From positions 62,001 through 126,000 of IMG/VR virus record IMGVR_UViG_3300021511_000003: a stretch of 64,000 nucleotides of DNA; one strand, 5' to 3'. The notes beneath the pieces were generated by a model. The model was not told where the DNA came from and did no database searches. It was given only the letters and a program-made list of their open reading frames with translations. Made by a program: the position numbers and the translations under genes. Every line of letters begins with the position of its first letter. The first letter of the stretch is position 1. This document shows positions 1,488 through 62,158 of this stretch, piece after piece.

Positions 1488-2450
1488 TTAAAGTACGAGT
1501 GACAAATATACAGGTTTATTTTTTTGGTAAATTATATCACCACCACCAGATGATGTTTGGATCAATGTTGTTTGAAGTGAGCCAATTTGATCTATAGTTT
1601 TACTGGATTTAATTTTAATATTTTCCATAAGAGGTAATATTTCCTCTCTAAGATGTTGAGAGAATTTTTCTAAAATATATTTAACATCAGATGGTGTTGC
1701 ATCGTTTGGAAATTCTGGCAATAATAATACTTTATTATTCAATTTACCCAATAGTTTTAACCTAACCATTTCTGCTCCATAACATCCACGGATTAAAAGT
1801 TTCCAGTATTCTTCCCAATGCTCACTTGATGGCATGATTTCGATACCAACTGGAACACCTGAAAACATAATGATGGCACCAATTTGATTTTCAACTGGTT
1901 CAAACTCTGCCGCAAAAATTTCGAGTTCTTCTTTAATAGTCGGATTATCATAAAAATATCTCAAATGCGCTGAACCAATATTAACACTTGGAATTCCCCT
2001 AAGCCATTCACTAATTTTTCCCCATAATTTTGAATAATTTTCATGAGATCTGATTGATTGTTTGAGTAATGTTTTTCTAAGGGTAATTGGTAAAATATCA
2101 CTATCTACAACATCATTTAAATAACCACCCTGACTTTCTTCAATACAACATGCATTCTTAAATGATCTTGATTGTTTTTTCATTACAATACCAGAACCAC
2201 TCATTGCATGATCCTGACCTTTAGTACTTCGGACCATTATATTTGTGGGGACAATGGCTTCTGCTGAAGTATCTTTATTTTCAAAGACCATTGTTCCATA
2301 TGAAGTTGTCCGTTTGAATGACAAATTTGTTGGTTTTGCTATATCACCCCTTTCATCCCCCAGTATCGGAATAATGGCCATCTCATCAACAGCCTGAATG
2401 TTACCAATCTCAATTTTATCAAAATTGAGTCTTTTAAAAATTGAAGACAT
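1488..2450 (-). CDS. ARPP-type (ARPP-1/ARPP-2, DUF6569-like) domain protein
   Basis: Motifs MAIIPILG, YG.M.F.N, QDHAM, A.CIE.SQGG, LW..I, FE....QIGAII..G..VGIE..PS..W; adjacent to a vWA gene as recalled for bacterial ARPP-2 operons (not searched). Confidence 0.65.
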   Translation of the reverse strand: MSSIFKRLNFDKIEIGNIQAVDEMAIIPILGDERGDIAKPTNLSFKRTTSYGTMVFENKDTSAEAIVPTNIMVRSTKGQDHAMSGSGIVMKKQSRSFKNACCIEESQGGYLNDVVDSDILPITLRKTLLKQSIRSHENYSKLWGKISEWLRGIPSVNIGSAHLRYFYDNPTIKEELEIFAAEFEPVENQIGAIIMFSGVPVGIEIMPSSEHWEEYWKLLIRGCYGAEMVRLKLLGKLNNKVLLLPEFPNDATPSDVKYILEKFSQHLREEILPLMENIKIKSSKTIDQIGSLQTTLIQTSSGGGDIIYQKNKPVYLSLVL

Positions 2451-2463
2451 TTATGACCTCCTA

Positions 2464-3990
2464 TTATTTCAATTGTTTATTAAATTTATTGATGAGTAAC
2501 TTCTTGACCATTTCACGATTATCAATCATACGATTAAAGATCATTTCGGTTTCCAAATACTTGTAATTCGATACAGGCAACGGGTTTGTATCTGCTGTTA
2601 ACCTTCGTGTTGTACCGATTTTTGCATCTGCAGAAAACACAGGATTTAAATGAATCAGGTTAAATTCATAACCTGACTTTTTAAAATGATTATAGGTATG
2701 TTCAAACATACCTTTTATTGTATTTTCATAACCGTCTGATATAACAATAATAGTCTGGGGTTTGGAGATTACTGCATCTATAAGAGCTTGCCATAGTTTT
2801 GTATCATTGTGTGGAACAATAACACTAATAGGATCTTTCGTTGGAGTTTCCATTCTTTTCCCACCAACATAGATAACATCCTTGACGTTATCCAATATTG
2901 ACAAGATTGATAATGATGTAAGAAATGGATGCATTTTTCTTTCGTTACTACCCATCATGGATCTTGAGGCATCAATAATAACAACACACTCTCCAATATC
3001 AATATGATTCAATTTTTGAGATTGATATTCAATTCCTTCCATGATTTTTTCAATATTGACTGAATCGCCATTGAATAATTTAAAATAAAATGCCTTCCAT
3101 AGATCGTAAATATCTTGATTTTTATAGTTGATAGTTTTTGATTTGGTTGCACCACTACGTTTAACAGCAGATTCCATTTGTAGTGCTTCTCTATCACCCA
3201 TCTTCGCTTGTTCGTAAATTTCAGATATTTTAATATTTACTTTATAAGTATTTCTGAAACCCATTACTGTTCGGTTCGGCATGCCTTTCATCAATTTCTT
3301 GAATCGTTTAACATTGCCATCTTGGGCAGCTGTACGAAGATCCCAATATCTTTCAATTTTTGGGTATCTAACCAAAAGAATATTTTTTGGTGGTGCATGA
3401 TCAAATATATGATAAACCACCGGCATGGATTTGATATTATATCGACCGATTCTTTTGTTAAACAATTCCTCATCACCATTCAGGATTTTAAATACTTCCT
3501 GCTTTCCAAGAGCATGTCTAACCAATTTTTTCAATTTTCTTTTATAGTTAATTGCCAACCCTTCAAGTTCTTGAGTTGAACGGTCGAATATAAACTCAAG
3601 AATAATCTTTCTAGTTCTGGAGTTGTTGACTTTTTTAAAACCTTCTTCACCGGTGAGCATCAAAAGATTCTTCAAAGCTCTTGGTATTTTTTCTTTGGAA
3701 AGATTATATTTGATAACTTTTTGTTCATAGTCGAATGGTAAACCACTCGGGATTAATTCTTTTCCTGTTACACTTTGAGGATTGGCAAGTAACATATGAC
3801 TCATTGCGCCTTTTGAAAATCCAGTTCCCTCAAGTATTGTTGTTAATCCAAATAATGTTCGGTCAAATAAAAACAACTCTTTCCACATTTTGTATACTCG
3901 TTGAAACTGTTGATTTGCTTCTTCATAAAACGCACCTTTCGGAGCAAACTGAAGCATTCCAGAATCAATAGTAAGTGATTTTTCTGTCAT
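2464..3990 (-). CDS. Ro60/TROVE-like helical domain plus C-terminal vWA (MIDAS) protein
   Basis: IIDASRSMMGS (DxSxS), IIVISDGYEN and HLNPVF motifs; basic helical N-terminal ~340 aa; SD AAGGAG favours a start at 3990. Confidence 0.65.
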   Translation of the reverse strand: MTEKSLTIDSGMLQFAPKGAFYEEANQQFQRVYKMWKELFLFDRTLFGLTTILEGTGFSKGAMSHMLLANPQSVTGKELIPSGLPFDYEQKVIKYNLSKEKIPRALKNLLMLTGEEGFKKVNNSRTRKIILEFIFDRSTQELEGLAINYKRKLKKLVRHALGKQEVFKILNGDEELFNKRIGRYNIKSMPVVYHIFDHAPPKNILLVRYPKIERYWDLRTAAQDGNVKRFKKLMKGMPNRTVMGFRNTYKVNIKISEIYEQAKMGDREALQMESAVKRSGATKSKTINYKNQDIYDLWKAFYFKLFNGDSVNIEKIMEGIEYQSQKLNHIDIGECVVIIDASRSMMGSNERKMHPFLTSLSILSILDNVKDVIYVGGKRMETPTKDPISVIVPHNDTKLWQALIDAVISKPQTIIVISDGYENTIKGMFEHTYNHFKKSGYEFNLIHLNPVFSADAKIGTTRRLTADTNPLPVSNYKYLETEMIFNRMIDNREMVKKLLINKFNKQLK

Positions 3991-4081
3991 TTCTATGAAT
4001 CTCCTTTTTTTTAGTTTCAACGTAAGATAATCATAACTAATTTTTTTGGTTGAAAAATAAAAAGCATCTTTGGCCTTTTTG

Positions 4082-4137
4082 TTTCAAATATGACTTATAT
4101 AATATTCGATTTGAAATTATATCAAATCGTCTCGAAA
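4082..4137 (-). ncRNA. Degenerate fifth scaffold module of the RNA array
   Basis: Core TATAAT-TTCA-(8 nt)-ATTATA; weak outer helix TTTCGA/TTTGAAA. Confidence 0.4.
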
Positions 4138-4175
4138 AAATTCTATACCATTTAAACAGTATATTCAAAAAATAA

Positions 4176-4301
4176 TCCTGAAAGTAGAAAATGTAATAGG
4201 TACTTGATAAAGTAAGAATTGAACTTACCGTCTTTTGCGTATAAGGCAAATACCCCACCATTGGGATTTTTTATCTGAAATCACAAATAAGTCTTTCAGG
4301 A
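4176..4301 (-). ncRNA. Scaffold RNA module carrying a tRNA-Ile(UAU)-like cloverleaf (4206-4275)
   Basis: Outer helix TCCTGAAAG/CTTTCAGGA; inner TGTGAT/ATTACA; insert GATAAA/TTTATC stem, D arm TCCC-AATGGT-GGGG, anticodon arm TTTGC-CTTATAC-GCAAA, T arm GTAAG-TTCAATT-CTTAC; no CCA. Confidence 0.8.
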
Positions 4302-4327
4302 AACTGTAAATTGTATAATAAAAAGAA

Positions 4328-4406
4328 ACTAGAAGTTGTATATGTAATATGATGTTTTGGCTTCTTCTCAAAAGAATAAAACTGAAATTACAAAAAGTCT
4401 TCTAGT
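4328..4406 (-). ncRNA. Scaffold RNA module with a short hairpin insert
   Basis: Outer ACTAGAAG/CTTCTAGT; inner TGTAAT-TTCA...ATTACA; insert GTTTT..TTCTT-loop-AAGAA..AAAAC. Confidence 0.7.
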
Positions 4407-4417
4407 GTTAAAATACA

Positions 4418-4548
4418 CCCGAAGTAGTAAGTGTATTAATTTGTCATACCACAGATGGCGTGGTAGAAGGGACTCGAACCCTATACGTTGCTTTATAAGA
4501 GCAGTGCTGAACCAATCAGCGATCAGAAAATACGTCTAAGTCTTCGGG
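4418..4548 (-). ncRNA. Scaffold RNA module carrying a circularly permuted tRNA-Ile(UAU)-like domain
   Basis: Outer CCCGAAG/CTTCGGG; inner GTATT/AATAC; D arm GCTGA-TTGGT-TCAGC, anticodon arm TGCT-CTTATAA-AGCA, T arm AGGG-TTCGAGT-CCCT, then CTACCAC-G-CCA-TCT-GTGGTA. Confidence 0.8.
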
Positions 4549-4560
4549 AAAAATATAAAA

Positions 4561-4619
4561 TGGAGTTATAAATGTAATTGGTTGATTTAACAATAATTTG
4601 AAATTACATAAATTCTCCA
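4561..4619 (-). ncRNA. Minimal scaffold RNA module (first in the array)
   Basis: Outer TGGAG/CTCCA; inner TGTAAT-TTCA...ATTACA; about 20-nt AT-rich insert. Confidence 0.65.
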
Positions 4620-4660
4620 AAATGTTCTTAAACATAATAAATCATTATTCTTATTCAGAT

Positions 4661-4674
4661 ATTAATATATATAG
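4661..4674 (-). promoter_or_regulatory. Putative phage promoter class A (CTATATATATTAAT)
   Basis: Identical 14-mer at four intergenic sites, each oriented toward the downstream gene. Confidence 0.6.
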
Positions 4675-4693: not shown

Positions 4694-4969
4694 TTAAGTA
4701 ACATCTACCATAGCAGGTTTTCTTGTATTATCTAAATCAAAAATAATCTTTTTATTTGAAAAATGATTTGCGGTATTCTTGATGATTTGTTTCATACCTT
4801 GTGGCATAAAATTATCAGTATAATATAATTGAAGTCCATCTTTGAAGCTAAATGCAATACCATCATGTGTTTCATTAACTTCAACTAAATCACTTCTTTT
4901 GATTTCAAGATTCATAGTACCTTTTTTAATGACAATCATTGATTCCTCAGTCATGTTATTCTCCTTCAA
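4694..4969 (-). CDS. Hypothetical protein
   Basis: ORF at the end of the RNAP operon; SD favours a start at MTEES. Confidence 0.7.
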   Translation of the reverse strand: MKENNMTEESMIVIKKGTMNLEIKRSDLVEVNETHDGIAFSFKDGLQLYYTDNFMPQGMKQIIKNTANHFSNKKIIFDLDNTRKPAMVDVT

Positions 4970-5572: not shown

Positions 5573-8500
5573 TTACCTCGTTAACATTAATGATATAAAA
5601 TATGAATTTAATAAATCTTTTGCTGGAGATATTTTTGGTTCTTTATAACCAGCATTGCCATTTTGAATAATCTCTGCCATTATTTTATCTCTTGTTATAT
5701 AATCATCAGATAATGGACCCATAAATTCAGCTAAAACATGTGGACAATTATATGAAATAAAAGAATAAGTATCAAGTTCACCCAGTCTTTGACCTCCATC
5801 ACGTTTTTTTCCACTTGTAGGTTGTGATGTTTTACCTGTTGTTGGACCGGTACCACGTGCATATATTTTCGCTTCGCCAAGATGTTCGAGTTTTGACATA
5901 TACATATAACCAACAGCAACTTCAAAATGGGTTTTAGTATTATATTTAGGCAAGAAAAGTTTATATTTTGTTTTCAAGCCTAATACTTTCAATGATTTTT
6001 TAATCTCAGTATGACCGGGTGCTTTAAATGGTGGTATAATAATTGGATAAAAACCAGTCTTTTTAACCTGGTCAATCATTTTTACATATTGTGTTGTTGT
6101 CAAACTTGATAAATTTCTAACAAGATTTTCTGTTGCTTTTTTATTTGGTGACATATCAAGATTTACAAATACTTGTTTTATGAGTGCAATTGTTTTTGGT
6201 TTTGTCATTGTTGGTAATCGTTTACCTAATTCTCTTGCCATCAATCCACAATACATTTCATATAACTGACCCATATTCATTCTACTTAAAAGACCGAGAG
6301 GATTTAAAATTGTTTCAATGATATCACCGTTAGGAAGTCTTGGCATTAATTCATCGTTTTCAATTAGTGAGATGATTCCCTTATTGCCATACCTATTCGC
6401 TAATTTATCACCAAGTCCAACTCGTAATTCCTGTTCAATTCTAAATCTTACTAATACTCCTTTGATTGTTTCACCTTTGACCGTAAACGATTCTTTTGCT
6501 GGTTTCATTGATTTAAGATTTGTTTTTGTAATCAACTCTTTTAATTGTGGAAATAGTTCTTCATCAACATTAGAATAAACTTCAATATCAACAATTTTTC
6601 CACCAGGACTCTTTTTAATAAATTGTCCAGTAAACATATCAGTTGTTTCATCATCATCGAAACCAATAATATCTTCAATATCACCAAGAGTCTTTCTTAA
6701 TAATGGTTTTCCTTTTTCAATTTCATCACCAATTTCTGCAATATATAAAAGCCTATCATTAGGAGCAATTAATATTTCTTCTTCAATACCATGTAATGAA
6801 GTCAATTTATCCTGTTCTACAACTGATTTACTAATAACTGCACCATCTTCAAAATTATATCCATCATATGGCATAAGAGCGCATAATAACGGTCTTCCAA
6901 GTGAAATTGATCCATTAGACATACATGCACCTTCTGCAATAACATCACCCTGTTTGACGGTTTCACCCACCTTAATCAAAGGGTTAAATACACTTAATGT
7001 ATTTTTTCCAGAACCAGATTTTAAATGAACCGGTGTTATATCAATTATCTTTTTTGTTTTACCACATTGAATTGTTATTAAATCCTTATGAACAGAAGAA
7101 ATTTTACCATTACAAGGAGATTTTTTCACAAAGTTTTTTGATAAAACACCTGTTAATATTGATTCATATCCAGATTGAACAACAGGGGGTTGTGGATTTC
7201 TTAAAGGCAACATTTGTTTTGCCTGATTTGAAAGCATAATAACCCTTGCACCATCTGTATTTTCAAGGAATGGAATCATTGATGTAGTCGTTGAAAGCAT
7301 TCCACTTCCTTCATTATCTGATATATCTTTTGTTGTAAATAAACCTCGTGATGACGATATCAATGCGTCTATGGTTAACTGTTGAACAATTCCAATATTG
7401 TCACTCTCGGATGTATCAAGAGGATCAAGATTTCCAAAATATGAATTATGTAAATTACGAGCATCATTATGAATAGCTCTTTTATCAGGAATACCTCCAA
7501 CCTTTTTACCAGCAGGAGACACTCTTGTCATAGTTGACATTTCTTCAAGAGGATTTGCGTATTCCATATCAACAACTAATTCAGTCATTAAAAAATCACT
7601 TAATACTTTAGTTGGTACTATTGTTAATTTTGCTTCTGTATTGCCTGATAAAACTTGCTCTTTATATACTGTGTAAGCTGCAAGAATTTGTTTTTGTGCT
7701 AAATGGACAAGAACTTCTGAATTTCTAATTCGTTGATTACTAATATCATTTCTTGCAATATAAAACCCATCAACAACTTTTTCTGTCATATATTTCATAA
7801 TCATTTCAAGATCAGTTGGTAATTGTTTATTTAATAATACTTGCTTAGCAACAGGATCAACAATATTTTGAAGATTTGAACTAATAAGAAATGTTGAGTT
7901 TAATCTACCTGATAATTGAATTATTAAATCTTCAAAATATTTATGTGAAGCAAATTCGGCATCACTTTTATATTGTTGTACTTTACCATGAATGAATGAT
8001 TGGCATAGTTGTTTTTGTAAATCTGTTTGGACGTTTTGGAATATAATATATTTTTCGTTGTTAATTTTACATGAGAATTTTTCACTTGGTTTATTATCTG
8101 ACAATATATATTTAATATTATATTTTTTTAAGGTTTCATCAAAACCAAAACTAAACGCAAGCAAAAATATTAATGGCATTTTATAAGACATGAAAGCTTC
8201 AAGATATTTTTCACGTCTTAGCTGTTTAACATATATTCTAAAAACAGAATATGAGCTTTCAAATCTTGATTCACCTGGTGATGGAAATGTAATTGGATTT
8301 TGTACAATTTGATTGATCAAACATTTTTGTTTACCATTCAGTCGAAACACTCCAGTATCAGGATCAATTTTTGGCAACTCCATTTTTATTTCATGTTTGT
8401 TTCCAAATTCATCTGACATATTAATTGTAGCAATTGATAAATCAGATCTCATTACTTCACCCATTCTTTGAGGTTTATCAGCAAGTGTAATCCCTTCAAA

Positions 8501-9649
8501 TTTCATAGGAATCTCTTTTGATTCTAAAACTTTGAATGAGTTTGTTAAATCCTTTTTCAGATTTGTTTTGAAATCAACCTGGCGTTTTTCATATACATGT
8601 TCAGGAGATTTATTATCAACCATTATTTGTGGACTATATACCTGAACTCTTGGGTCAGTACTTAGATTTACAGTTTTAACAGGTTTTAACAGTTCACTTG
8701 AAAAGTTTTTATCTATTGCTTTTAATGCAACTTTCTTTCTTGATTTTGGTATCTGTCTTGCAATAGCGGTTGATTTAGATTTATCGCCACTGACTCCATA
8801 CAATATCGCTGAAGTTGCTATATCTCTCACATCATCGCCTGACGCATCACCAGAGGTTATTTTAATAATATCATCTGGATTTGTTTTTAAATATTTTTCA
8901 ACTGCGCCAGCAACATTTTTTATATTTTTTGGTTCAATATCAGTTGAAATAGCTTTGCTTATAATTCTTGCAGCCTTTTTTGTTTGGTTTTCAACCTCTT
9001 CTTCTGCTGGAATACTTTTAATAGTTCTTATATAGTGGGTCAATCTTGCGAATTTATATTCATTATCTTTCACGAGTAAACGATATTTTGATGAACTAGC
9101 ATCTAAATAATTTATTATCATATGATCAAATAAAAAGTTTCCATTTTTCATATCTCGTATAACAGGAAATATTTTTTTGTCAATAAATGGATTGATTTCT
9201 TTTGAAATATCAACAGAATAAAATAATATCTTTTGATAATTATCTGGAAAAGCATCTGACATTTGCTTCAAAATATTTGTAATAAAAAATCCAGCTCTTT
9301 GTCTATACGTAGTAGGCTTATAAACTGTATCAATAGCATTTGTATATTGTGATAAATCTACAATAACATTCTTCCCTTGCGGTATATTTTGTTGCATTGT
9401 ATAAGGAATTAATCCAAGAGCTTTATACATTTTTACAAATTGTGCTGTCATTCTTGTACGTGGAACCTGTGTAACTGGACTTGCAACAATACGAAAATCA
9501 ACTCTTTTTAAATTCAATTTTAGGTAATCTGTAATGAAATTAGAATTTTCAGAAAAATATATAATAAGATATGGTTCTTTTGGATTTTGCGGAAACCTCA
9601 CACCATCCGTTACATGCGTATATTGTTTCCATGATTTAAATTGAATCAC
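5573..9649 (-). CDS. rpoB: DNA-directed RNA polymerase beta subunit (phage type, N-terminal extension)
   Basis: GVFRLNG, YFGNLDPLDTSESDNIG, GYNFED, GDKLANRYGNKGII, LNPLGLLSRMNMGQLYE, KLEH, QPTSGKKRDGGQRLGELD. Confidence 0.95.
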   Translation of the reverse strand: MIQFKSWKQYTHVTDGVRFPQNPKEPYLIIYFSENSNFITDYLKLNLKRVDFRIVASPVTQVPRTRMTAQFVKMYKALGLIPYTMQQNIPQGKNVIVDLSQYTNAIDTVYKPTTYRQRAGFFITNILKQMSDAFPDNYQKILFYSVDISKEINPFIDKKIFPVIRDMKNGNFLFDHMIINYLDASSSKYRLLVKDNEYKFARLTHYIRTIKSIPAEEEVENQTKKAARIISKAISTDIEPKNIKNVAGAVEKYLKTNPDDIIKITSGDASGDDVRDIATSAILYGVSGDKSKSTAIARQIPKSRKKVALKAIDKNFSSELLKPVKTVNLSTDPRVQVYSPQIMVDNKSPEHVYEKRQVDFKTNLKKDLTNSFKVLESKEIPMKFEGITLADKPQRMGEVMRSDLSIATINMSDEFGNKHEIKMELPKIDPDTGVFRLNGKQKCLINQIVQNPITFPSPGESRFESSYSVFRIYVKQLRREKYLEAFMSYKMPLIFLLAFSFGFDETLKKYNIKYILSDNKPSEKFSCKINNEKYIIFQNVQTDLQKQLCQSFIHGKVQQYKSDAEFASHKYFEDLIIQLSGRLNSTFLISSNLQNIVDPVAKQVLLNKQLPTDLEMIMKYMTEKVVDGFYIARNDISNQRIRNSEVLVHLAQKQILAAYTVYKEQVLSGNTEAKLTIVPTKVLSDFLMTELVVDMEYANPLEEMSTMTRVSPAGKKVGGIPDKRAIHNDARNLHNSYFGNLDPLDTSESDNIGIVQQLTIDALISSSRGLFTTKDISDNEGSGMLSTTTSMIPFLENTDGARVIMLSNQAKQMLPLRNPQPPVVQSGYESILTGVLSKNFVKKSPCNGKISSVHKDLITIQCGKTKKIIDITPVHLKSGSGKNTLSVFNPLIKVGETVKQGDVIAEGACMSNGSISLGRPLLCALMPYDGYNFEDGAVISKSVVEQDKLTSLHGIEEEILIAPNDRLLYIAEIGDEIEKGKPLLRKTLGDIEDIIGFDDDETTDMFTGQFIKKSPGGKIVDIEVYSNVDEELFPQLKELITKTNLKSMKPAKESFTVKGETIKGVLVRFRIEQELRVGLGDKLANRYGNKGIISLIENDELMPRLPNGDIIETILNPLGLLSRMNMGQLYEMYCGLMARELGKRLPTMTKPKTIALIKQVFVNLDMSPNKKATENLVRNLSSLTTTQYVKMIDQVKKTGFYPIIIPPFKAPGHTEIKKSLKVLGLKTKYKLFLPKYNTKTHFEVAVGYMYMSKLEHLGEAKIYARGTGPTTGKTSQPTSGKKRDGGQRLGELDTYSFISYNCPHVLAEFMGPLSDDYITRDKIMAEIIQNGNAGYKEPKISPAKDLLNSYFISLMLTR

Positions 9650-9821
9650 TAGTTTCCCCTCTGCAAATTATATTTGTTAGTTTTCCTGTTGAACATTCAT
9701 TTTGATGACCTTTTTTAATATATTCGGGACAATTACTTGAATGTTTACTATAACACCATTTACCATTTTTAAATTGATAATTAGCTTCTTGACTACAACC
9801 ATAATTGCATAGTTGTATTAT
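9636..9821 (-). pseudogene. Miniature HNH-family remnant: N-terminal Cys motif fused in frame to the C-terminal tail
   Basis: Reads IIQLCNYGCSQEANYQFKNGKWCYSKHSSNCPEYIKKGHQNECSTGKLTNIICRGETSDSI*; ATA at the start position. Confidence 0.75.
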
Positions 9822-12800
9822 TCCTTTTTTTCTTCCACAAGTGTACCAGTAAGGACTTTTTCAAGAACAGATGCTTCCCCAGTTTCATCAGTAATCAATC
9901 CAGTTTTTATAGCTTCGTTGATATTTTCGAAGGCCAGTCCCTGAATAAAACTTGTCTTGAATACAATCTGTTTAATATTAATCATAACAGGATCCCATTT
10001 ACGTCCAAGTCTTGCAGGAATACTCTGATTGGCTCTATCTCTTAATGATTGTGATAATAAAATTTCAATATGAACACTATCCATATCTCTAAGATCACCA
10101 TATATTTTAAATAATTTTAAATATAAATGATTAGCATCTTTATAAATTTCACGCCCTCCAATTAGTCTTTCAACATATTGGATTTGTTTTTTCATTGCTT
10201 CTGTTTCTGTTGGTACTTCTAATATTGTACTATGTTTCTTATAATATAATTTGATTGTTTCTTTATTTTCTTCGATTTCATATATTTGAAATTTAATTGG
10301 ATAATCAAGAATGATATTATAGATTGAATCTGAAAATTCAACTATAGCTACAGAAGCTCTTATAGACAAAATAGTTTTTGTATCATTAAATGTCAAATCT
10401 CCTGATACTGGGTAATCTCCTTTTGAAATTGTAACTGTACAATCATCGTTACATGCCAATACATTATCATTTTGTATTAAAGTCTTTCTTACAATCTTTT
10501 CATCTACAAGAGCATCATTCTGAATAATATCGTCAATGATATTTCTTGAAACAACACTTACTGCACCGCCTGTGTGGAACGTTTTCATAATAGTCTGTGT
10601 TCCAGCTTCACCAATAAGCTGTGCTGCCATTACACCTGCATATGGACTTCGATGACGTTCTAATAGTTTTCCATAACAAGTATGACATAGTTTTGAAGAT
10701 TCACAAAATACGGGTGTTCGTAAATGAATTTGATCTCCAATCTTATAATTTACAGGATTAAATAATTGAGGTTTACCATTTTCAAGAACATAACGACCAT
10801 TCAGTCTAGTTGATAGTTTTTTAGTTAACCTTAGATCAAGAGTCCTTTTTGTTTTACAATCTTGTAGATTTGGATCAATCTCAACACTGTTTAAAACATA
10901 TGCTAATTTTCTTGCCATGTATCCAGTATCTGCAGTATTTAAAACTCTATCAATAATACCACTTCTTGCACCAGACGCTGCTGAAAAATATTGACTATTT
11001 GTTAAACCATCCGAAAACGAACCATCTATTGGAGGTAATACTTTTCCTGTTGGATCAGATACTAAACCTTTAGCAACAAAAATTTGTGTTGGTTGTCCCC
11101 AACCTTTACCTCCACCTGATTCAATTAAATCATAAACACCACTTCCTTTCAAATGTTCTATTAACATTACTTGCATTTTTTTCAATAATACATCGGCTTC
11201 CTCTGTTGATGAATTTTTCAATTGTTTTTTAAGCTCTAAAATTTCAGGTGGTAATTGAATATCATCTAATGTAATACTTGGTGAAATGATTGTTGAAAAT
11301 TTAAATGAAATATCTTTTAATTTTGAAAAAGATTTAATTGCTTGTTCCTGACCATATTTTTTAAGAATTGGAGAAATCATTCCATTAACAACTTTCTTTG
11401 TCACTATATCATTATAAAATGGAGTATCCAATGGAAATACACTATTAAAAAGAGCTTTTCCCATTGTTGTAGTTTTCTTTCTATATACTACAGGAATATA
11501 TGGATCAACAGCATTATCTAAATCTTTTTGTGTTACTGCAATAGGAGGAGTTGTTCTTTTTATATCTTTTGTGATTGTAAAAAGTCCAACACACATTTCT
11601 TTTGAAAGTTCAAAATTTACAGATTTATCATTATCACCACTTTCAGATCTCATCATTTTAGTTTTTGCTTCAAGTTGTGCTTCATTCGTAATTGGATGAA
11701 AAATTGCCATAGTATCACCATCAAAATCAGCATTGAATCCACCAACTTGTAATGTACATAATTGCACTGTATTCCCTTTAATTAAAATTGGATTAAATGC
11801 TCTAATAGATTCAGCATGTAAACAAGGGTCACGTTTTGCCAATACAACACGATTCATCATAGCAACTTCTGTTGCTTCAAATACAATATCATATAGTTCT
11901 TTTGGTATTTTATCTCCACTTTTAATAGACTTGAAAACTTGTTTAACACCATCAACAGAAAGTTCAAATTTTGTAAACTTTTTAACTTCATCTGATAATT
12001 TCTTTTTATCAACCCGACTTGAAAATAAACGATGTAATATAAATGGTTCAAATAAACTAACAGCCATCCGTAATGGTATCCCAATTTCATTTACTTTTAA
12101 ATCTGGACCTGGTGTAATAACGGCACGACCAGAAAAATCTGTACGTTTACCAAGCATTTGTGATCGAATTAAACCACGTTTTTTCTGAATTAATTTTCTA
12201 ATAAAATTGTCATGATTAATAATTGCTTTTTGTAATTCAAAATTCAACAAATCAAATAATGGTCCACTTTTTGCAGCACTCCTTATCTGATGTGCTCGGC
12301 GTATAGTTGTGATATAATAATCATTTAAAGGATCAATAATCCACATTCCATTTTCATCTTGATATGCATCTCGTTGAATTGGTGGTATTACTGGTAAAAC
12401 ATCTAAAAATAACGTATTGTTTTCATATGATTCTTTTATCTTTTTAATGAATTTATCTCGAGTATCAGACCCCCCTCTAAATTTGATTTTTGGAAGTAAC
12501 TTCATAAATGATGAAATTCCAGTAACACCTCTTGAATCTTTTTGAAGAAGCCCTTTTGAATCAACTGAAAAGGTTTCTTGCGCAGATATAAATAATTCAA
12601 TTTGTCTATCAAGTTGAATAAGAAGTATATATGCAGATGGGTGAATAACATAAGCATTTAAATTAATATATGAAAATGTTTTCTTTCGTTCAGTAGATTC
12701 TTCGGATCCAAAAATTATTTCAGAAAAAAGACCATCAGGATGAAACTCCCCAGGTTTGGAAAATAATTCCGTTGTTGTTACAGGGGTCAATCCTTTTTTG

Positions 12801-12829
12801 AAATTATTTATATTCAGAAAATTAATCAT
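9818..12829 (-). CDS. rpoC: DNA-directed RNA polymerase beta' subunit
   Basis: GLFSEIIFG, LPVIPP, LGKRTDFSGRAVITP, catalytic FNADFDGDTM, TADTGYMARKL, GEAGTQTIMKTFHTGG. Confidence 0.97.
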   Translation of the reverse strand: MINFLNINNFKKGLTPVTTTELFSKPGEFHPDGLFSEIIFGSEESTERKKTFSYINLNAYVIHPSAYILLIQLDRQIELFISAQETFSVDSKGLLQKDSRGVTGISSFMKLLPKIKFRGGSDTRDKFIKKIKESYENNTLFLDVLPVIPPIQRDAYQDENGMWIIDPLNDYYITTIRRAHQIRSAAKSGPLFDLLNFELQKAIINHDNFIRKLIQKKRGLIRSQMLGKRTDFSGRAVITPGPDLKVNEIGIPLRMAVSLFEPFILHRLFSSRVDKKKLSDEVKKFTKFELSVDGVKQVFKSIKSGDKIPKELYDIVFEATEVAMMNRVVLAKRDPCLHAESIRAFNPILIKGNTVQLCTLQVGGFNADFDGDTMAIFHPITNEAQLEAKTKMMRSESGDNDKSVNFELSKEMCVGLFTITKDIKRTTPPIAVTQKDLDNAVDPYIPVVYRKKTTTMGKALFNSVFPLDTPFYNDIVTKKVVNGMISPILKKYGQEQAIKSFSKLKDISFKFSTIISPSITLDDIQLPPEILELKKQLKNSSTEEADVLLKKMQVMLIEHLKGSGVYDLIESGGGKGWGQPTQIFVAKGLVSDPTGKVLPPIDGSFSDGLTNSQYFSAASGARSGIIDRVLNTADTGYMARKLAYVLNSVEIDPNLQDCKTKRTLDLRLTKKLSTRLNGRYVLENGKPQLFNPVNYKIGDQIHLRTPVFCESSKLCHTCYGKLLERHRSPYAGVMAAQLIGEAGTQTIMKTFHTGGAVSVVSRNIIDDIIQNDALVDEKIVRKTLIQNDNVLACNDDCTVTISKGDYPVSGDLTFNDTKTILSIRASVAIVEFSDSIYNIILDYPIKFQIYEIEENKETIKLYYKKHSTILEVPTETEAMKKQIQYVERLIGGREIYKDANHLYLKLFKIYGDLRDMDSVHIEILLSQSLRDRANQSIPARLGRKWDPVMINIKQIVFKTSFIQGLAFENINEAIKTGLITDETGEASVLEKVLTGTLVEEKKE

Positions 12830-12981
12830 TATACGCATATCCTTTGTGCCAAATTACCTGTAGAACATTCATCTTTATGACCATATTTATAGTGACATCT
12901 TTCACATACAGACCATGCTAAATCTGGATCTAACTTAAAAAAATGGGTTGCTTCTTTGCCACATCCATCACAAATAATCAT
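12829..12981 (-). CDS. 50-aa miniature HNH-family derivative
   Basis: MIICDGCGKEATHFFKLDPDLAWSVCERCHYKYGHKDECSTGNLAQRICV*; TAATG overlaps at both ends. Confidence 0.75.
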   Translation of the reverse strand: MIICDGCGKEATHFFKLDPDLAWSVCERCHYKYGHKDECSTGNLAQRICV

Positions 12982-15511: not shown

Positions 15512-15570
15512 AAACACTTATATCTTTCATTAGTTATTAATATATATAGACATGGAATATATAAGTGTTT
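15512..15570 (-). promoter_or_regulatory. Class A promoter motif (15536-15549) flanked by a perfect 12-bp inverted repeat
   Basis: AAACACTTATAT (15512-15523) and ATATAAGTGTTT (15559-15570). Confidence 0.55.
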
Positions 15571-15590: not shown

Positions 15591-16502
15591 TTATATTTTA
15601 CACACCAAATCTTTTAAGACTTGCTCAAATATTTCTTTTGGTACTGTTGTTGTGCCTGATTGTGTTACTACATAAGCAGCGCATTTATTTGCAAGAATGG
15701 CTGCTTCGTGTATAGAATAATTCATTGATAAACATAAACCCATAACAGCCACAACCGTATCACCGGCACCTGAAACATTGTAAACTTCAACGGGTTCTGA
15801 CATAATTGAATATTCTTTATTATTCAACTTATTATATAAAATCATTCCATGTTTGCCTTTTGTTTCAAGAATAAATTTTACATTTTTTAATGAATATTTA
15901 GATGATAGTTTCATGATTTTCCATTCTTTTTCATTGGGTGTAATCATGTAAGCATCATTATATAAAAAGCCATTAATTGGTTTTGGATCAACAATGATTT
16001 TTGTATTCAGAGTTTTAAGAAATTCCATTAGTTCTTTTGTAATCATTCCTTTTGCATAATCCGAAACTATAATAACATCATATACTTTTCTACAATCTTT
16101 AAGGAAAACTTCAATTGCTCTTTTTGAATCAATTTTCGAGATTGTTTCTCTATCAACTCTTAACATTTGAACTTTACGGTCATCAGCAATAATTCTTTCT
16201 TTTACAATTGTTTGTTTTGAACCGTATGAACATAAATTCTTTGCGCCTATATTATCCAATTCATTAATTATCAACCCCCCATTGATATCATTCGAAATTG
16301 AGGACATACAATCAACTTGTGCTCCGAGTTCTCTAAGATTTCTACAAACATGGCCACAACCTCCCAAAGTATAATATTCTTCTTTAACGTGAACAACAGG
16401 TACAGGAGCTTCTGGGCATATTCTTTCAACTTTACCTATAATATATTTGTCAAGCATTATATCGCCAACAACTAAAACTTTCACATGACCAGTTTCTTTC
16501 AT
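15591..16502 (-). CDS. hldE: D-glycero-D-manno-heptose-7-phosphate kinase (HldE/RfaE domain I, PfkB family)
   Basis: VLVVGDIMLDKY, ERICPEAPVPVV, SDYAKG, VDPK, ITPNEKE, VYNVSGAGDTV. Confidence 0.9.
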   Translation of the reverse strand: MKETGHVKVLVVGDIMLDKYIIGKVERICPEAPVPVVHVKEEYYTLGGCGHVCRNLRELGAQVDCMSSISNDINGGLIINELDNIGAKNLCSYGSKQTIVKERIIADDRKVQMLRVDRETISKIDSKRAIEVFLKDCRKVYDVIIVSDYAKGMITKELMEFLKTLNTKIIVDPKPINGFLYNDAYMITPNEKEWKIMKLSSKYSLKNVKFILETKGKHGMILYNKLNNKEYSIMSEPVEVYNVSGAGDTVVAVMGLCLSMNYSIHEAAILANKCAAYVVTQSGTTTVPKEIFEQVLKDLVCKI

Positions 16503-16566
16503 ATACACCGCCTTTTTAAAATTTTCGTGGCAAAAAAGAGTATCGAACTCATTTTTTGTAAAGTGT

Positions 16567-19450: not shown

Positions 19451-19531
19451 AACTTTTCCCTTCTATAATAAAAAATATTTAATTTAATTTCTCAAAAATA
19501 AACGTACAATATACAATTATTTTTATTAGTT

Positions 19532-19545
19532 ATTAATATATATAG
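19532..19545 (-). promoter_or_regulatory. Class A promoter motif
   Basis: CTATATATATTAAT upstream of the exported-protein cluster. Confidence 0.6.
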
Positions 19546-51167: not shown

Positions 51168-51250
51168 TTTGTTCCAAAAACTTTATTCAATTATTAATAT
51201 ATATAGATGGAACATATTAATAAGAATAAAATTTTAACTTTAGGAACAAA
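51168..51250. promoter_or_regulatory. Divergent promoter region at the strand switch
   Basis: Class A motif 51193-51206 (-); class B motifs 51168-51175 (-), 51209-51216 (+) and 51243-51250 (+). Confidence 0.55.
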
Positions 51251-61490: not shown

Positions 61491-62158
61491 TGTATAATAA
61501 AAATAAAACAGATTGTCCAAGGGGTTTTTATTTTAACAAAGATAAACAGGAATGTGTTCCTATTCAAACTGGTGTTGAGGATAAACTTATATTAAAAGCA
61601 GAAAGATATTTTTTCAAGGAAAACAAAGATTGCCCAGATGGTTTTCATTGGTGCGATCAAACAAATCAATGTATTGAGGATGACTCAGAAAAAAGACAGG
61701 GAAAAGGAAAAGGATTTGGGAAAGGAAATGGGCCAGTTGGTGTTCCTAAAAATGAAGATGTAAATGGTGTTTTTGAAAAGATTAAAGAATCAGAAATAAT
61801 AATTGACAAAATTCTTAATAGGCTTGAAGAAAGTAATTATCTTAATGATGTTACTTTAAGTACGATCATTATGAAGTATGGAATTAGAGCTTCTAAGATG
61901 TATAATAGATGTATGGATAAAGCAAAAACACATCCTATATTAAGTAAAAATAGAGCTTTTGCCAAAGCCACTTGTAAATATAATGATGCGATGTATAACG
62001 TGAAACAGTTAAAAGCTCATATAGGAATGTGTGCACAAGCAAAGAATCCAAATAAATGTAAAAAACAAGTATTGGATGCAATAAAATTGGATTTAAAGTT
62101 GGCAGCTGTTTATGCCAAAAGAATAAAAAAATTGAAACCAAAACTGAAAAAAAATTGA
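61490..62158 (+). CDS. Cys-rich hypothetical protein (two CP.GF...C repeats)
   Basis: 222-aa ORF. Confidence 0.65.
   Translation: MYNKNKTDCPRGFYFNKDKQECVPIQTGVEDKLILKAERYFFKENKDCPDGFHWCDQTNQCIEDDSEKRQGKGKGFGKGNGPVGVPKNEDVNGVFEKIKESEIIIDKILNRLEESNYLNDVTLSTIIMKYGIRASKMYNRCMDKAKTHPILSKNRAFAKATCKYNDAMYNVKQLKAHIGMCAQAKNPNKCKKQVLDAIKLDLKLAAVYAKRIKKLKPKLKKN

Follow-up and report, generated by a model that had tools for sequence, protein, structure and literature searches.

A probable, very divergent Ro60/Y-RNA-type locus with modular small RNAs and an ARPP partner gene in jumbo phages and bacteria

The stretch of DNA analyzed here (the window) comprises 64,000 nucleotides of IMG/VR virus record IMGVR_UViG_3300021511_000003 (positions 62,001 to 126,000), part of a 223-kb viral contig, and its minus strand carries an array of small structured RNAs followed by two protein-coding genes on the same strand (Table 1). 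The RNAs form five modules of one design within a 630-nt gap between an open reading frame (ORF) at 4694-4969 and a gene that starts at 3990. This gene has a good ribosome-binding site and encodes a protein with a vWA domain and a Ro60-like predicted fold (hereafter the Ro-like protein), and the five modules lie 90-630 nt upstream of its start codon. The second gene encodes a member of the ARPP family. A sequence-only reading of the window, made without database searches, had proposed that the array consists of scaffolded small RNAs with exchangeable and in part tRNA-like cargo, which would be loaded onto a TROVE-like ring together with ARPP. The analysis below confirmed its observations and supports its interpretation, which withstood each of the computational checks named at the time as able to refute it; the decoy or repair function that it also proposed remains a matter of inference.

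Table 1. Coordinates of the RNA modules, genes and associated motifs in the window.
Feature	Position	Strand	Description
Promoter-like 15-mer CTATATATATTAATA	4660-4674	minus	40 nt upstream of module 1; exact motif search
Module 1	4561-4619	minus	Short insert of ~20 nt; R1 54.3 bits at 4560-4620; outer helix UGGAG/CUCCA, inner helix AUGUAAU/AUUACAU
Module 2	4418-4548	minus	tRNA-like domain without acceptor stem (4466-4524) plus extra hairpin; R1 20.9 bits, E=1e-4, filters off (4419-4547)
Module 3	4328-4406	minus	30-nt hairpin insert; R1 57.7 bits at 4330-4404; minimum free energy (MFE) structure equals scaffold, z=-3.9
Module 4	4176-4301	minus	Complete, non-permuted tRNA-like cloverleaf (4205-4275); R1 37.4 bits at 4179-4298
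Module 5	4082-4137	minus	Decayed form of the last module, which is conserved in relatives (GACUGAGUGUGAUUUCAGA type); R1 13.0 bits, E=0.012 at 4081-4128
Leader element AAAAAUUAGUUAUGAUUAUCUUACGU	4020-4045	minus	Between last module and ribosome-binding site of the Ro-like gene; kept in 12 related phages (A6)
Ro60-like protein, 508 aa	2464-3990	minus	N-terminal all-helical repeat region and C-terminal vWA domain with full MIDAS; AlphaFold2 and Foldseek
ARPP protein, 320 aa	1488-2450	minus	Begins 14 nt past the stop codon of the Ro-like gene; Pfam ARPP-1 PF20208

Read from 5' to 3', the modules share a single scaffold order composed of an outer helix, the 5' strand of an internal loop, an inner helix, the sequence UUC(A/U)(G/A), an insert, the 3' strand of the inner helix, a run of unpaired bases and the 3' strand of the outer helix. 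In the window the outer helix spans 5-9 bp and closes with a G-C pair that holds a conserved G, the 5' loop strand is ACUU (except for AAUU in module 1 and ACGA in module 5), the inner helix spans 5-8 bp, the 3' side of the internal loop contains five to eight unpaired bases and the inserts span about 10-90 nt. The general plan drawn from the sequence alone was thus retained and its details were refined: the conserved G ends the outer helix, the loop reads A-C-U-(U/G), and an inner helix of 7-8 bp is followed by U-U-C-A-G-A. Single-sequence folding (MFE or centroid structures) recovered the outer helix of every module and, for most modules, the inner helix as well, with z-scores of -1.1 to -3.9; in module 2, the fold encloses D, anticodon and T hairpins within a 7-bp outer helix. 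CRISPR-like or transposon repeats were considered and rejected, given that structure is common to the modules and sequence is not. Two ORFs (4037-4261 on the minus strand and 4357-4539 on the plus strand) were likewise rejected as coding, since they overlap the RNAs and conservation falls on paired columns.

We describe the scaffold with covariance models. The first of these (R1) has as its seed 17 modules with short inserts, which include two from the window and belong to a near clade of AT-rich relatives with 50-76% protein identity. With filters off, R1 returned exactly five matches between positions 3900 and 4800, in module order, in accord with the four clear modules and the degenerate one claimed earlier for this strand; with default filters it returned three matches in the whole 64-kb window (both strands), all inside the module gap and none outside it. 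The decay of module 5 is evident in its score when compared to the 41-66 bits of orthologous last modules in related phages. In an alignment of the 17 modules produced by MAFFT alone (A4), 97.6% of cells pair, versus 73% in shuffled sequences and 36-47% when the partner strand is slid, and note that these seed modules were chosen by a pairing-demanding finder, a selection that inflates the paired percentage and leaves the variety of pair types unaffected. Two-sided changes occur at 17 of the 19 pairs. Over 238 kb of sequence R1 gave 57 matches at E<0.01 (E-values of both models being rough), 40 of them outside the seed, and all 57 are on the sense strand at most about 1.2 kb upstream of Ro-like homologues.

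An alignment of 58 near-clade modules establishes which parts of the scaffold vary and which are fixed. Both helices vary freely in sequence, with covariation at all 14 modelled pairs. The unpaired A-C-U is present in 58, 57 and 58 of the 58 sequences, the U-U-C after the inner helix in 58, 55 and 57, and the U-G-U of the inner helix in 55, 47 and 55. The loop is asymmetric, the 5' A-C-U facing a 3' U-A-Y-Y-A strand. R1 is blind to a distant clade of homologues (21-27% protein identity) from GC-rich genomes, for which its best score was 17.7 bits, and a second model (R2) was built from a second MAFFT alignment in which 86.9% of cells pair, versus 64.8% in shuffles, its seed too having been selected for pairing. 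The distant plan reads CGRG, then (A)ACU.., then 8-9 bp, then U(U/A)C(A/U)G, and R2 gave 64 matches, all on the sense strand and all but one (63 of 64) directly upstream of a Ro-like gene. A simple finder gave a concordant distribution, with 1.62 modules per kb upstream in the sense direction versus 0.09-0.15 per kb in antisense and coding controls, and at least one module in 50 of the 59 loci with enough upstream sequence. Since this kind of ad hoc helix finder has a noise floor (about two matches per 128 kb of shuffled sequence, at a stricter threshold), our counts rest on the covariance models and matched controls. The scaffold therefore accompanies homologous operons, as the sequence-only reading had anticipated.

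The arrays of relatives (loci of the family are numbered with the prefix L) present some features of their own. Columns 19 and 105 of alignment A7, in the inner helix of distant modules (e.g., L053 2721-2817), form a non-standard pair in 13 of 21 rows, C-C in the rows inspected, a pairing that recalls the bulged C of the canonical Ro-binding helix. Extra hairpin RNAs of the form GGGGYG...CRCCCC, some with an ACU-type loop, are found in the arrays of L002 (~3367-3426 and ~3438-3496), L003, L005, L008 and L009; they lack the UUCAG scaffold, are missed by R1 and do not occur in the window. Finally, a spacer, AUUUUAUG, precedes each module in some relatives (L005 ~3290-3810, L002 ~3360-3500) and is not evident in the window. 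It may mark a site of processing or serve as a short phage promoter.

The array lies directly upstream of the Ro-like gene on the same strand, no convincing intrinsic terminator was found between the two, and the leader contains a further conserved element (AAAAAUUAGUUAUGAUUAUCUUACGU), which has one mismatch-free match in the whole window and could be a second promoter or an operator. This layout would also suit a cis-acting leader of the Ro-like/ARPP mRNA, that is, a set of autoregulatory operators or attenuators instead of trans-acting RNAs. We consider such an explanation very unlikely, because each locus holds three to eight independent modules with unrelated inserts, tRNA mimics among them, and a U-rich spacer follows every module. 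Furthermore, 100-400 nt lie between the array and the start codon in several bacterial loci, and canonical Ro60 loci with the same co-transcribed upstream layout yield separate Y RNAs (PMC4201824).

The AlphaFold2 model of the Ro-like protein, derived from an alignment of 25 sequences (predicted local distance difference test score, pLDDT, of 80.7), consists of helices over residues 25-326, which make up the N-terminal two-thirds of the protein (~330 aa), and an alpha/beta domain at residues 335-480. The identification of the latter as a vWA domain holds: the whole family keeps D340-x-S342-x-S344 and D419 of the metal ion-dependent adhesion site (MIDAS) without exception, and T396 matches the consensus at its position. 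When the model was compared to PDB structures with Foldseek, the 11 best matches were all Ro60, Rsr or TROVE entries (probability 1.00, E 6.6e-6 to 5.9e-4), after which scores drop sharply. These entries include Xenopus and human structures, Deinococcus Rsr, the Ro60 of Thermus phage phiLo and one entry titled 'Trove domain', and they bear directly on the TROVE-like fold that had been proposed without a structural search. Among viral structures in BFVD, the top match was a 'Ro-like RNA binding protein [Gordonia phage VanLee]' and the fifth a 'TROVE domain-containing protein' of a crAss-like phage. The best reading of the model is that of a very divergent Ro60-type protein, for which a ring is predicted.

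The protein has 258 close metagenomic relatives, and a family profile retrieved 702 proteins only from 1.84 billion representatives; the public names, where there are any, are either 'hypothetical' or 'VWA domain-containing'. The protein had no match in PHROGs, NCBIfam or PADLOC, and it is not a listed defence gene. Megablast with the locus as query matched none of 50,697 phage records, and tblastn retrieved one unannotated 462-kb uncultured phage at 25% identity.

The ARPP assignment made by the sequence-only reading is secure, the ARPP-1 domain (PF20208) being matched with 70 bits (cut-off 27, E=2.7e-19). Invariant residues of the family include Q79, D80, C102, Q107, R125, E184 and R221, with C102 and Q107 present in 14 sequences from both clades. 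Foldseek comparison of the AlphaFold2 model of ARPP (pLDDT 89.5) with PDB found nothing better than E=0.05, in agreement with the only paper describing the domain, where ARPP is said to be unrelated to known domains and is predicted to use a conserved Cys and Gln in an enzymatic reaction on ribose or ADP-ribose (PMC9503650). In every complete locus from L001 to L066 but L022, ARPP is the next gene after the Ro-like gene and has the same orientation; in L022 it is found elsewhere in the locus. Clustering of all ORFs from 50 loci did not reveal a third conserved gene, only antisense shadow ORFs. A Ro-like/ARPP gene fusion in GC-rich genomes was rejected as well, since the long open frames arise where two reading frames overlap. 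Overall, the RNA scaffold, the Ro-like protein and ARPP are exclusively linked, and the linkage extends across phyla.

Scans of IMG/VR and of one genome per species produced 23 viral loci and 80 species-representative loci, the latter mostly bacterial; many of the bacterial ones derive from metagenome bins and may represent prophages. Among the carriers are Minicystis rosea and other Myxococcota, many Planctomycetota (Rhodopirellula, Stieleria, Novipirellula), Streptomycetaceae (Yinghuangia, Embleya), Bacteroidota, Gemmatimonadota, a Pseudohongiella and one Pacearchaeota bin. The GC-rich version of the scaffold lies upstream of distant homologues in Myxococcota, Planctomycetota, Streptomycetaceae, Bacteroidota and other phages. 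The system is phage-borne, as originally described, but not restricted to phages, being widespread in bacterial genomes too.

Many distant members are surrounded by tRNA genes. The 3-4 kb flanks of 20 of 66 loci contain 5-35 tRNA genes, several of them 16-35, and the Ro-like/ARPP pair lies inside arrays of 16-35 tRNA genes in L021, L025, L026, L031, L033, L045, L049, L050, L057 and others. These carriers comprise a 191-kb viral contig, the Minicystis rosea chromosome and several Planctomycetota and Myxococcota bins. The tRNAs of the flanking arrays do not have the scaffold; in L025 three scaffold matches, all adjoining the Ro-like gene, stand against about 35 tRNAs. In a Bacteroidales bin, a group I intron (RF00028, 81.6 bits) was found just 3' of the ARPP gene (L035 5422-5640).

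Two of the window inserts had been called tRNA-like, and the Rfam tRNA model recognizes both. It matches the insert of module 4 with 47.5 bits along the full model (4205-4275, minus strand; model positions 1-71) and that of module 2 with 29.4 bits along model positions 6-65 (4466-4524, minus strand). By conventional standards neither is a tRNA: the acceptor stem of module 4 spans 6 bp and is not followed by CCA, module 2 lacks this stem altogether, and ARAGORN called neither of them, nor a tRNA anywhere in the window. The anticodon loop of module 4 is CUUAUAC.

The outer helix allows orthologous modules to be traced between phages. In the window, as in most relatives, the 'CCUGAAAG' module encloses a tRNA-like cloverleaf, and the D, anticodon and T stems of its orthologues covary, with double changes at 22 of 28 predicted pairs. 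In L009 (3676-3740), the same scaffold holds a 24-nt insert only, which supports the view that cargo is exchangeable, one of the central proposals of the sequence-only reading. ACCAA follows the acceptor stem in most relatives, and the window copy has AAGUACCU at that place. In distant loci one module often appears to be ordered as T arm, closed acceptor-like hairpin and D arm (by eye in L021, L046, L013, L035 and L025); when circular permutations of ten distant inserts were submitted to ARAGORN, a tRNA was recognized in one of them (L049, in permuted form only), so the other assignments rest on inspection. Circular permutation of a tRNA mimic is known from YrlA (bioRxiv 10.1101/312249).

The anticodon loop of the orthologues of the 'CCUGAAAG' module is a constant 7 nt long, with U33 in nine of ten and a purine at position 37 in all ten, and the triplet changes in almost every phage (UAU, AUG, UUA, AAU, UUG, AUA, AUC, GAU). 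ARAGORN calls the copy at L003 3695-3769 a suppressor-type tRNA with anticodon UUA, and other orthologues are of A34 type (AUG, AAU, AUA, AUC). A triplet that diverges fast over a covarying stem, flanked by fixed positions, fits an arms race, and both tRNA-cleaving defences and the counter-measures of phages are well documented (PMC11555353, PMC13096335). The array might on these grounds be a stand-alone decoy or sponge for host anticodon nucleases or tRNA-binding defence proteins, in which the scaffold helices shield the tRNA mimics and the neighbouring proteins are dispensable. We find this improbable, since bacterial chromosomes of several phyla carry the system with the same gene pair, modules that have no tRNA are conserved at least as well as those that bear one, and the unpaired scaffold positions that do not vary suggest a protein dedicated to binding them.

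The strongest rival explanation, still an unlikely one in our judgment, regards the modules as cassettes for the expression and processing of real small RNAs, chiefly tRNAs, with helices that guide RNase P and 3' trimming. The freed tRNAs or minihelices would act alone, for example by supplementing or replacing host tRNAs struck by defence nucleases, and the Ro-like protein and ARPP would be transient maturation or quality-control factors at most. The tRNA-like domain begins exactly at the G after UUCA, an RNase P-like junction, most relatives encode the CCA (ACCAA after the 3' strand of the acceptor stem), and some embedded tRNAs reach 67-70 bits and have ordinary anticodons (Ile-GAU in L004; Lys-UUU and His-GUG in L013). 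Moreover, the YrlA of M. smegmatis is cut by RNase P and given CCA (PMC4201824), and phage tRNAs are known to counter tRNA-targeting defences (PMC11555353). What such cassettes leave unexplained is the strict linkage to the protein pair. In addition, many modules without any tRNA retain the invariant loop nucleotides, whereas the ordinary tRNAs of the flanking arrays do without the scaffold, the anticodons of orthologues are unstable and include A34 types and one stop anticodon, and several inserts have no acceptor stem or are apparently circularly permuted.

The 15-mer CTATATATATTAATA, which the sequence-only reading had located 40 nt upstream of the array as a promoter motif, occurs in exactly four copies in the window, all on the minus strand (the others at 15535-15549, 19531-19545 and 51192-51206). 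Each copy lies in an intergenic gap upstream of a minus-strand ORF, and the motif is also found upstream of RNA arrays in related phages; from this sequence pattern, it probably represents a phage promoter class. Next to the RNA array are large genes similar to the beta/beta' subunits of multisubunit RNA polymerase (5573-9649 and 9818-12838, minus strand), which indicate that the contig belongs to a jumbo phage with its own RNA polymerase. A scan for sigma-70 promoters found 21 sites, compared to 24.7 in shuffled sequence, and this absence of excess is uninformative because the phage has its own polymerase. Elsewhere in the window, a c-di-GMP-I-GGC variant riboswitch aptamer (RF03167; 16569-16643, minus strand; 65.2 bits, cut-off 59) immediately precedes the ORF of a PfkB-family kinase (15591-16508, minus strand), a pairing unusual for a phage.

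Ro60/Y-RNA particles are conserved from bacteria to humans, and human Ro60 is an autoantigen in lupus and Sjogren syndrome. The protein forms a ring whose hole receives the single-stranded ends of misfolded RNAs, and Y RNAs bind by a conserved stem to its outer face and with their other end tether partners such as PNPase. In bacteria and phages, Y RNAs are encoded upstream of rsr in polycistronic precursors and one of them is a tRNA mimic (PMC4201824, PMC12135203). The locus described here resembles the bacterial systems (Rsr with YrlA, YrlB or Yrn, including the RYPER complex with PNPase) in several respects: its protein is predicted to be of the helical-repeat and vWA ring type, several small RNAs are encoded shortly before the gene in the same orientation, with a polycistronic arrangement, the terminal 5'/3' stem of each RNA leads through an internal loop to another stem with an effector domain, and at least one effector domain mimics tRNA, a mimic that in distant loci appears permuted as in YrlA. 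There are also differences. The tRNA-like domains of the window are non-permuted and keep the anticodon arm, arrays reach eight modules, and the fixed partner is ARPP and not RtcB/RtcA, nor is there any link to PNPase.

The closest phage counterpart is the Ro60 of Thermus phage phiLo, which binds two upstream Yrl RNAs and host PNPase (PMC12135203). Here too a Ro60-type protein of a phage has Y-like RNAs in its upstream non-coding region, and the phiLo structures (9l5y, 9kop) are among the best fold matches of the window protein, with ~12% identity in the structural alignment. However, Yrl1 and Yrl2 of phiLo, which were identified through a CGAA motif, are devoid of a tRNA-like domain, and no ARPP partner was reported (PMC12135203). 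The ARPP systems centred on ARG share the ARPP-1 domain with its conserved Cys and Gln, but in them ARPP stands beside ADP-ribosylglycohydrolase, HIRAN, WYL or deacetylase genes, and the accessible passages make no mention of a TROVE or vWA partner or of an RNA (PMC9503650). The distant members of our family sit in arrays of 10-35 tRNA genes as are found in phages and mobile islands, whose tRNAs are plain and have no scaffold; the window has no conventional tRNA gene. Within the searchable literature, in which journal coverage is partial, we found no description of the combination of protein, ARPP and RNA or of vWA genes in tRNA arrays.

We read the locus as a very divergent RNP (ribonucleoprotein) of the Ro60/Y-RNA type, built with ARPP as fixed partner and probably working on tRNA, and assign to this reading a probability of about 0.62. 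Several observations weigh against it. The structural match of the Ro-like protein to Ro60 is moderate, with template-modelling (TM) scores of 0.43-0.51 and root-mean-square deviations of 8-11 A, and sequence similarity to Ro60 is not detectable: Pfam, including TROVE (PF05731), has no match for the window protein or for eight relatives, and searches of PDB sequences with phmmer and the family profile found no Ro60, only chance matches (villin, HlyU). The canonical Ro-binding motif (GNCGAAN0-1G in bacteria; GGUCCGA with a bulged C in animals) is absent from all five modules, as had been noted at the outset for their non-canonical stem, and in its place the scaffold conserves G followed by ACU, UGU and UUCAG. 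Similarly, YrlA (RF02553) has no match at E<=10 between positions 3800 and 5000 of the window and none at gathering score in 13 loci, and its sub-threshold matches of 29.7 bits (L035 920-1007) and 23.8 bits (L046), against a cut-off of 69, do not fall at modules. In the module region Rfam returned tRNA only at E<=10, with no Y_RNA, so the RNAs fall outside existing Rfam families. The copies in the window are partly decayed, module 5 being degenerate and module 4 having a short acceptor stem and lacking CCA. In relatives, certain scaffolded tRNA-like inserts have the scores of genuine tRNAs and an ACCA end, and these could be released as working tRNAs. Lastly, the one paper that describes ARPP links it to ADP-ribose systems and not to Ro60 (PMC9503650).

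Under the Ro60/Y-RNA reading, the putative phage promoter would drive a single transcript containing the five Y-RNA-like modules. We infer that this transcript is processed into separate RNAs, that these are physically bound by the Ro-like protein, that ARPP has a role in the particle and that tRNA is the target. The scaffold would be the site at which each module docks on the Ro60-like ring, a proposal based on the invariance of unpaired ACU and UUCAG and the conservation of UGU, as expected of nucleotides in contact with a protein. The variable insert would project from the protein as an adapter, which may be a full cloverleaf, a core without acceptor stem or a small hairpin, and by analogy with Ro60, Y RNA and PNPase the adapter may bring in or gate the substrates and partners of both the ring and ARPP. 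ARPP, a predicted enzyme with invariant Cys and Gln, would be the effector or a recruited cofactor, possibly attached via the MIDAS face. Since inserts mimic tRNA and distant members sit in tRNA gene arrays, tRNA is the likely substrate class, and during infection the particle could serve in the surveillance, repair or neutralization of tRNA that is damaged or cleaved, with repair, degradation or protection against the tRNA nucleases of the host as possible outcomes.

We suggest that the locus be filed under a second lineage of RNPs of the Ro60 type, one that uses an RNA code of its own and has ARPP as obligate partner, and in which the same genomic and structural grammar is written in different letters. 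This lineage of about 700 representative proteins, unrecognizable at sequence level, would combine a sharply defined and different putative RNA docking motif, modular cargo and a single invariant protein partner, and would provide the first functional context for the orphan ARPP domain. Its placement inside tRNA arrays makes the role of tRNA-like Y RNAs directly testable, and cultured carriers exist (Yinghuangia soli, Minicystis rosea, Rhodopirellula baltica SH28, Stieleria). The compact scaffold, which in the window tolerates inserts of about 10-90 nt, is also a possible display handle. Only tentatively, the system may be envisioned as a so far unrecognized and widespread tRNA-care machine of jumbo phages and bacterial tRNA-array islands, in which the scaffold is the handle, the adapters select damaged, cleaved or chemically modified tRNAs, and ARPP repairs or caps them as an enzyme of a new kind that processes RNA ends or ribose. 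If this doubtful but possible scheme were true, ARPP would acquire a first function, and Ro60-type RNPs would prove to have a second lineage that is independent and uses a different RNA code.

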